Of a stretch of 64,000 nucleotides of DNA, positions 43,939 through 44,862 are shown piece after piece. The DNA lies in NCBI RefSeq assembly GCF_964204645.1, contig NC_134032.1, positions 13,318,275 to 13,382,274 on the forward strand. Reading direction: 5' to 3'. Position 1 is the first letter of the stretch; each line of letters starts with the position of its first letter. The notes beneath the pieces are model-generated. The model did no database searches, was not told the DNA's origin, and saw nothing but the letters and a program-made list of their open reading frames with translations. The stretch comes from Tubulanus polymorphus (lineage: Eukaryota; Animalia; Nemertea). Made by a program: the position numbers and the translations under genes.

Positions 43939-44862
43939 GCGCCAAAACTTCTACTCACTCGGCTCGGTTGCGTTTCCTGAATGCCGGAGGGGTACTGCTA
44001 GATGCAAACCACTACAGTACTTGAAACTTCCATTCACTCGGCGTAGGGAATCCCGTACTATTGAGGGGTCAGTGGTTCGAATCTGGGAGTAGATTAATGA
44101 GTTTTAATTAGTTTATTTCCATCCTGCCAATCTTCATATTCTCAGCTCATTTTATCAGTGAAAAATGACCTGACAACTAAATAAATGATACCTTTTTCTA
44201 TAAAATCTCTCCTCTGCTTTTTAAGGGCTTGGAACCTTCTACCATGTTTTTGACATAGTAGGCAGCATTAAAAATTTTATAGTTTGTCATTTGCATAACA
44301 GGCAGGCTTCTAAGCACAATGCACATACACACTCAATCGAAAAATTACAATTTTGGACATATACACTGAATTGAAAAATTACAATTTTGAGGGACTTCTA
44401 GTTTAAAATAAGTTCTACTACTAAACTACAAATTCTAAATGTTAGAGTGAAATTTCTTAAGTCAAACTACCACTGAATCAAACTACAAATTTCAAATTTT
44501 ATAGTGAATTTTCTAAAGTTGAACTACCATTAAATCAACCAAATATTTCTGGAATCCCTATTCTAGTATAAAACAAATAAAAGATACAAATTTAAAAAAT
44601 AAAACTCAAAATTAAAACTGCCAATTATTAATAAACAATTATAAAATAATAAACCATCAAACTAAATAAATTATAAACAAAACCATCAAACTGAATAAAT
44701 TATAAACAATCAGTCCAGTGTGATGAAGCAAGCCTGAAATTCATCAAGGGTTTTTCAAAAACTTGTTACAATCTAAGGAGAATTCTGGATACAATTTTAT
44801 ATTTCTTTCACATGGTCCTTAGATTTTTCACAAATTTTCACATAAAATGTCACAAAGTTAGA

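Follow-up and report, generated by a model that had tools for sequence, protein, structure and literature searches.

The window analysed here is the whole 64,000-nucleotide stretch of Tubulanus polymorphus DNA, C8:13318275-13382274, and genome searches covered the 268 Mb assembly of 77 contigs from which it is taken. On its minus strand the window contains a tRNA-Lys(CTT) gene that is interrupted at nucleotide 13/14 by two head-to-tail elements of 8,253 bp, referred to as copies A and B. The 5' remnant of the gene, nucleotides 1-7 (GCCCGGC), lies at 60463-60469 and matches 10 intact genes of the same kind, while the 3' remnant, nucleotides 14-73, lies at 43881-43938 and gives an Rfam tRNA match (L003). 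Owing to the interruption, ARAGORN detects no tRNA in the window. In the sense of the tRNA the order is GCCCGGC-TAGCTC-[B]-TAGCTC-[A]-TGGCGC-AGTCGG, so that three hexamers frame the two inserts. The first, TAGCTC at 60457-60462, represents the native nucleotides 8-13 of the tRNA and lies 5' of copy B (52204-60456). The second, TAGCTC at 52198-52203, separates the head-to-tail copies as a 6-bp spacer and is the same as the hexamer at the 5' flank of the pair. The third, TGGCGC at 43939-43944, follows copy A (43945-52197) and is the non-native and apparently carried hexamer with which this analysis is concerned. All of these features are on the minus strand, and on the plus strand the three hexamers read GAGCTA, GAGCTA and GCGCCA respectively.

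Comparison of the window with itself at an offset of 8259 gives a single uninterrupted run of identity from 43944 to 52203, which makes copies A and B 100% identical over their 8,253 bp. A preliminary description of the window, made from its letters, had given this layout of flanks and the identity of two copies of about 8 kb, and in the assembly both are correct to the base. It had further pointed out that the last hexamer departs from the others at two of six positions and conflicts with the D stem; TGGCGC and TAGCTC do differ at 2/6 positions, and in tRNA-Lys TGGCGC would create a G-A mismatch in that stem.

All of the long open reading frames of the element are on the strand of the tRNA gene. 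In copy A, an exon-like frame for the N-terminus of a transposase lies at 50422-50934 (minus strand, as are the following) and contains the motif LQFGKFRGKKFQW, which matches Dada-U6_DR. The frame at 48963-49478 encodes the first half of the Pfam domain DUF6729, including a CCCC zinc-finger region with a C-x4-C pair (CPVATC) and, after it at the end of the exon, LEC, the second Cys pair being beyond the intron. The adjacent frame at 47597-48958 encodes the second half of DUF6729 together with a DDE catalytic core that has a DxxH after the second D (KIDST, YTDRDCC, DVWH, SLESFH) and is conserved among 26 homologues. The DUF6729 matches in these two adjacent frames have E values of 2e-36 and 2e-42. 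A C-terminal frame at 45144-45920 encodes a CCHC zinc finger (CPKC-x8-H-x8-C, followed by FFGNWYC). The N-terminal, zinc-finger and C-terminal motifs can be aligned by eye with the Dada-U6_DR and U1 proteins (Dataset S1, PMC3706591). Open reading frames of at least 50 amino acids on the coding strand gave no match to a recombinase or other catalytic domain, even when E values of up to 1 were admitted.

In the transposase sense copy A starts with TAGCGGGCGCGCG and ends with GAGTAGAAGTTT; these do not form an inverted pair, and the element is thus without terminal inverted repeats. Short sub-terminal repeats, TTCAGGAAA and TTTCCTGAA, are present at about 30-95 nt from either end, and there is a perfect 22-bp hairpin at 52103-52170. 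Each copy also contains a motif resembling a twister-P1 ribozyme (44206-44274, minus strand), which at 53.6 bits is below the Rfam cut-off of 67.2 and is unrelated to the question of the hexamers.

With the transposase exons searched singly, an exhaustive search returned 2,513 protein relatives. The nearest of these, at 61-62% identity, are from cypriniform fish and others are from amphioxus, both of which are known hosts of Dada elements. The features by which Dada elements are recognised are present throughout: a DxxH-type DDE transposase, both zinc fingers, and short sub-terminal repeats in place of terminal inverted ones; a length of 8,253 bp, within the range of 4.7-11 kb, with homologous pieces of reading frame separated by stops and frame changes as in a multi-exon gene; and specific target sites in multicopy genes for small RNAs with flanks of 6 bp, the range for Dada being 6-7 bp, namely nucleotides 8-13 of tRNA-Lys, nucleotides 8-13 of tRNA-Met and a 5S rRNA gene, alongside off-target copies in unique DNA. 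By its sequence, then, the 8,253-bp unit is identified as a very recently active DDE transposon of the Dada superfamily, belonging to a lineage that inserts at nucleotides 8-13 of tRNA genes. As four copies are without differences and a fifth has one, the family is probably still active. Other Dada families are also present in the genome.

A structural model of the catalytic reading frame (AF2/AlphaFold, mean pLDDT 77.9) was compared with known structures. The best Foldseek match was the transposase of ISCth4, a member of the IS256 family (E 2.9e-4), and VIA-align gave this enzyme a Z score of 13.3 over 262 residues with an rmsd of 4.2, against values of at most 10.7 for integrase cores, 9.2 for the P element transposase and 9.1 for Hermes. 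The protein is accordingly predicted to have an RNase H-like DDE fold that is closest to ISCth4.

Whether TGGCGC could have belonged to the interrupted gene was addressed by a whole-genome pattern search. All 10 of the intact tRNA-Lys-CTT genes carry TAGCTC at the site and none of the 10 carries TGGCGC. The preliminary description had held that the hexamer is not native here, a view that intact TGGCGC alleles of tRNA-Lys would contradict, and the assembly contains no such allele among its 10 genes. The same description had assigned TGGCGC to other tRNAs, and this too agrees with the genome, in which the tRNA-Met genes fall into two groups: at nucleotides 8-13, three have TAGCGC and seven TGGCGC. 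Among the youngest copies of the element, three to four have no differences over 8,253 bp and one further copy has a single difference; two point changes within six flanking bases are therefore not credible. On this comparison of genes, TGGCGC at 43939-43944 evidently did not derive from the host tRNA-Lys gene.

Copies were collected from the whole genome using the terminal 300 bp of the element, and their flanks are given here in the transposase sense as 5' and 3' hexamers. At C8:14.09 Mb a copy that is 100% identical (copy E) is located inside a tRNA-Met gene with the arrangement GCCTCGT-TGGCGC-[E]-TAGCGC-AGTTGG. The invaded gene matches the TAGCGC-type gene L057 in the T stem and 3' trailer, and it is therefore the 5' TGGCGC that is the foreign hexamer at this locus. 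At C6:20.19 Mb a copy with one mismatch lies in unique DNA between TGGCGC and TGGCGC. At C11:7.73 Mb a copy of 99.4% identity is inserted antisense in a 5S gene with C+TGGCGC+TCC on its 5' side and CCATCC on its 3' side, the neighbouring 5S genes reading CCATCC. Two deleted copies on C10 have TGGCGC at the 5' end (in one case with 4 extra bases), paired with GTGGCC in one and CTGACC in the other. Three 5' fragments, one on C19 and two on C9, all have TGGCGC, which in one of the C9 copies is doubled.

Taken together, TGGCGC adjoins the 5' end of the element at 8 of 9 independent loci whose flanks are mutually unrelated further out, and it persists there in copies of 95% to 100% identity. It adjoins the 3' end at 2 of 6, a sidedness that is read from only six complete copies. 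Identical elements thus have the foreign hexamer on the 5' side in tRNA-Met and on the 3' side in tRNA-Lys, with the hexamer of the target itself on the opposite side and no bases gained. Since the native TAGCTC is kept on the other side of the insertion, the hexamer of the target has been swapped on one side rather than duplicated. Irrespective of the flank, the carried stretch measures 6 nt, which fits a stagger set by the enzyme better than a conversion tract. The preliminary description had proposed that the hexamer came in with the element and that the hexamers at both ends of all copies should be collected; TGGCGC does recur at unrelated loci, at the 5' end in 8 of 9 and on the opposite side of the identical tRNA-Met copy. 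That TGGCGC travels with the element, nearly always on its 5' side in this genome and here on its 3' side, is a reading that these flanks support well.

Perfect 6-bp pairs are found around copy B (TAGCTC) and around the C6 copy (TGGCGC). The TAGCTC pair around copy B suggests that ordinary duplication, or transposition from a donor with the same flank, also occurs. Some older copies depart from a clean swap of 6 nt, at the left end in 5S, at the doubled TGGCGC on C9 and at the extra bases on C10, and these irregular junctions are an imprecision beyond what a simple model predicts. For the C6 copy no paralogous empty site was found, its immediate flanks being unique. U1 snRNA was considered as the target of that insertion and rejected, as the U1 genes of the genome read ...CTGGCACAGG and have only 11 nt in common with the flank. 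No end-to-end junction with a spacer of 0-20 nt was found in the assembly besides that of this window, which has TAGCTC rather than TGGCGC as its spacer. Excision footprints, searched for in tRNA-Met genes as the hexamer plus 1-12 extra bases, were not found, and no copy in the assembly is now located in a TGGCGC-type tRNA-Met gene.

Earlier work on this superfamily has already described how target hexamers are replaced on insertion. Dada-tA replaces TAGCAT by GCGCAA through a mechanism that was called unknown, and tandem Dada copies with one hexamer between them have been reported (Kojima & Jurka 2013, PMC3706591). Five fish lineages target nucleotides 8-13 in the orientation of the tRNA, at TAGCTC (tK, tY) or TGGCGC (tN, tR), and Dada-tY_CaAu changes TAGCTC to TGGCGG at this position (Kojima 2022, PMC8869645). 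The replacement may be on one side or both (PMC3706591, PMC8869645). It has been stated that Dada transposition "may not always generate TSDs", and the authors speculated that an ancestral flank has moved along with the element ever since (PMC8869645). A search of the literature for subsequent studies of how the replacement comes about found none. The present finding is thus a rediscovery of a published and unexplained trait of Dada elements, and what is new is the host and the hexamer TGGCGC. As with Dada-tY_CaAu and Dada-tA, a foreign and family-specific hexamer replaces the native one in an element of the same superfamily, and the site of tY is identical. The differences lie in a host other than a fish, whose U1 and 5S genes seem to be of invertebrate type, in the hexamer TGGCGC, in the replaced side, which is reciprocal between copies that are 100% identical, and in the presence of a tandem junction. 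Together, the reciprocal outcomes and the tandem junction set tighter limits on the mechanism than the cases published so far.

Any model has five facts to accommodate: exactly six bases are carried; they may be on either side; there is no net gain; TGGCGC is strongly biased to the 5' side and has long persisted there; and perfect pairs and messy junctions occur as well. The best explanation, and the one that we favour on balance, is that the Dada element carries a hexamer from its donor site and that flaps derived from a junction spacer are ligated into a target cut with a stagger of 6 nt. The mobile intermediate would retain 6 nt from the flank of the donor, in most cases the hexamer of the 5' flank. 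Its likeliest form would be an end-to-end junction with a 6-bp spacer, in a circle or a tandem dimer, as when elements of the IS256 family transpose by copy-out/paste-in. Nicking at both 3' ends would leave the strands of the spacer as 6-nt 5' flaps, one at each end of the element, and if the Dada target cut has a stagger of 6 nt these flaps would exactly fit both gaps, opposite the hexamer of the target. They may then be ligated instead of being trimmed and filled, especially where their sequence is close to that of the target; TGGCGC agrees with TAGCTC at 4/6 positions and with TAGCGC at 5/6.

Such ligation would produce heteroduplex hexamers on both sides, which replication would resolve to either (carried, target) or (target, carried), and which mismatch repair or removal of a flap could convert to (target, target) or (carried, carried). 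Provided that the 5' flank is the usual template of the spacer, only the (carried, target) progeny would transmit TGGCGC, which would explain the 5' bias. The progeny of copy A would bear TAGCTC, in keeping with the TAGCTC pair around copy B and the TAGCTC in the junction. The tandem itself may have arisen by insertion of B into the flank hexamer of A or may represent a dimer junction, and both would give a TAGCTC spacer; the observed identity of the 6-bp spacer with the 5'-flank hexamer of the pair is likewise what would be seen if a further insertion had hit the flank hexamer. The preliminary description had opposed a hexamer carried in by the element to gap-filling of a staggered cut. This dichotomy does not hold, as a 6-nt staggered cut with ligated flaps gives the same pattern. 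Against our model stand the remoteness of the kinship to IS256 (14% identity) and the fact that the sole junction in the assembly carries TAGCTC and not TGGCGC.

The rival that survives best, and that we nevertheless regard as unlikely, is a linear cut-and-paste in which the non-transferred strand is cut 6 nt outside the element and 5' overhangs of 6 nt from the two flanks of the donor are ligated into the gaps of the target, with no circle. Both arrangements seen here, (carried, target) and (target, carried), would result from it as well. Cut-and-paste is the mode of transposition of hAT, P and MuDR, which Kojima & Jurka named as the relatives of Dada in eukaryotes (PMC3706591), a fact that speaks for this route and against the junction-based model, and the P element (Z 9.2) and Hermes (Z 9.1) are among the structural matches. 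However, five copies with zero to one differences are easier to obtain by a replicative route, the persistence of 5' TGGCGC in old and young copies is easier to understand if the 5' flank is re-used, and the best structural match is to a copy-out/paste-in enzyme. None of these three points is decisive.

Homing-like copying, in which a break in tRNA-Lys was repaired from a copy residing in a TGGCGC-type tRNA gene by way of the resemblance of their A-box/D-arm sequences, and the hexamer was co-converted, appears improbable. Genes of this type do exist as tRNA-Met, and the AGT that follows the hexamer is common to tRNA-Lys and tRNA-Met, so that a conversion tract could stop there. Those genes hold no copy now, however, and the carried stretch is also 6 nt at loci without tRNA homology (the unique DNA on C6, C19 and one of the two C10 loci, C10b). 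A fixed length at loci where the flanks share no homology argues against copying of a conversion type, and a tract extending to the opposite side would have to end precisely at the tip of the element in each copy.

An error of assembly or consensus at 43939-43944, an artificial tandem, or both, with the truth being a TAGCTC duplication around a single copy, is more improbable still. Identical repeats in several copies are difficult to assemble, but such an error must by chance have produced the hexamer of the other copies (1 in 4,096), and a mis-join would import a whole foreign flank, yet the sequence next to the hexamer is that of tRNA-Lys. Least credible of all is an ordinary 6-bp duplication in which two point mutations later arose, or a rare variant of tRNA-Lys with TGGCGC as the site of insertion: position 9 of tRNA-Met does differ, as A or G, from one gene copy to another, but there are no differences in 8,253 bp among A, B and the tRNA-Met copy, none of the 10 intact tRNA-Lys-CTT genes has TGGCGC, the change breaks a D-stem pair and is identical to the hexamer beside other copies, and a variant target predicts TGGCGC on both sides and not TAGCTC on one.

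To our knowledge, Dada elements are the only DNA transposons that target specific sites in multicopy genes for small RNAs, and we know of no study of their chemistry. They have been proposed as vectors for gene delivery to safe harbours. The combination of an opposite-side hexamer in two tRNA genes, an end-to-end junction and near-identical copies leads to a concrete prediction, that 6-nt flaps from the donor are ligated into a 6-nt staggered target, and makes this genome an unusually clean case for working out how the hexamer is replaced. If the prediction is true, flanking hexamers could not be read as target duplications in the annotation of Dada elements, and variants at positions 9 and 12 of tRNAs near past insertions may be footprints of transposons.

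With respect to known systems, the closest comparison is within the superfamily. The Dada-tK, tN and tR lineages of actinopterygian fish use several types of tRNA (PMC8869645) and share with the present family the site at nucleotides 8-13 and hexamers of 6 bp, whereas the nearest proteins in the database are only 61-62% identical. The Tubulanus family also differs in that, as one family, it is found at TAGCTC, TAGCGC, a 5S site and sites outside RNA genes.

Outside the superfamily, the preliminary description had likened the hexamer to the coupling sequences of Tn916 and to the spacers of IS256 circles. The likeness to Tn916 extends to the product, with six donor bases on one side, the six bases of the target on the other and no duplication. 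It fails on the enzyme: the coupling sequences of Tn916 are the work of a tyrosine recombinase, and this element encodes none and is predicted to have a DDE/RNase H-like fold. Among DDE-type elements, piggyBac and Tn7 resemble the proposal in that their excised ends have 5' overhangs of donor flank. The 4-nt TTAA overhang of piggyBac equals the stagger of its target and is ligated without synthesis, but donor and target are both TTAA and nothing foreign is visible; in Tn7, TnsA cuts 3 nt out in the donor flank, but the overhang is trimmed. No homology of the present element to piggyBac or Tn7 was found.

The comparison with IS256 bears more directly on the intermediate, and the closest predicted fold being that of ISCth4 lends it indirect support. 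End-to-end junctions of ISCth4/IS256 contain 5-8 bp from the flank of the donor; integration is best with a spacer of 6 bp, and the spacer is lost on integration with an 8-bp duplication of the target (PMC7780238). IS256 is also known to form tandem dimers (Prudhomme et al. 2002, cited in PMC7780238). Both families use a DDE transposase, but IS256 has terminal inverted repeats and 8-bp duplications while Dada has neither and shows 6-bp hexamers, and the absence of the inverted repeats counts against our model. A further difference is that the stagger of Dada (6) equals the proposed length of its spacer, whereas the spacer of IS256 is discarded; equal lengths of stagger and spacer would let the spacer be kept. 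If the IS256-type reading is true, the element would be a DDE transposon with the behaviour of coupling sequences, and the reciprocal flanks in tRNA-Lys and tRNA-Met would be the two segregants of heteroduplexes. We therefore put forward, tentatively and as one possibility, that Dada is a eukaryotic counterpart of IS256-type copy-out/paste-in transposition in which the 6-bp spacer is ligated, so that the hexamer of the target is swapped and an ancestral hexamer is dragged through successive targets.

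The hexamer TGGCGC, which is carried by the Dada transposon as a sequence foreign to its tRNA-Lys target, is also found at nucleotides 8–13 of 7 elongator tRNA-Met genes in the genome assembly. The elongator tRNA-Met genes (loci L056–L060, at C8:15209453-15373981, C6, C7 and C8:14207835) fall into two forms according to these nucleotides, TAGCGC in three genes and TGGCGC in seven, with the seven grouped on contig C8 at 15.2–15.37 Mb. The form with G at position 9 may be the footprint of an old passage of Dada, or else may be ordinary variation. At L051 (C11:7732664-7742663), where a copy of the element lies within a 5S gene, the left junction reads C+TGGCGC+TCC where CCATCC is expected. 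This junction is 10 nt long rather than 6 nt, and lies outside all of the explanations proposed so far.

The element's 3′-terminal motif in transposase sense, GAGTAGAAGTTT, has two further copies inside copy A, both in direct orientation. In plus-strand coordinates, one is at 44023-44040, 79 nt in from the 3′ end, and the other at 51712-51729, approximately 470 nt in from the 5′ end. They could serve the transposase as binding sites, or could be alternative ends. Two perfectly matching 22-bp arms (52103-52124 and 52149-52170), separated by a 24-nt loop, form an inverted repeat that lies 28–95 nt inside the 5′ end and includes the sub-terminal motif TTCAGGAAA/TTTCCTGAA, which is present again approximately 30 nt from the 3′ end. 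Also near the 3′ end, on the plus strand and so opposite the transposase strand, is a stretch resembling a tRNA T-arm of the GGTTCGAATC type (44058-44090), in which ARAGORN called no tRNA.

Other repeats in the window include three direct copies of an approximately 1-kb sequence (16074-24588), spaced by approximately 3.0 and 3.9 kb and 87–95% identical where 300-nt samples were compared. A perfect 108-nt inverted repeat with a 14-nt spacer (31011-31240) and a long self-complementary simple-repeat palindrome (40307-40482) have no relation to the Dada transposon.

Elsewhere in the assembly there are additional diverged Dada transposase genes of 40–59% identity, some with open frames, at C4:18714260, C11:4478267, C9:11301253 and C4:19077972 among others. 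All copies of the 8,253-bp element that retain its 3′ end, including those at L001, L004, L005, L006 and L007, contain a motif similar to the twister-P1 ribozyme. In copy A this motif is found at 44206-44274 on the minus (transposase) strand, approximately 260–330 nt from the 3′ end, and the 8259-bp identity between the copies places its counterpart in copy B at 52465-52533 on the same strand. The motif scores 53.6 bits (E = 5e-10), below the Rfam cut-off of 67.2, and preserves the majority of the core positions.
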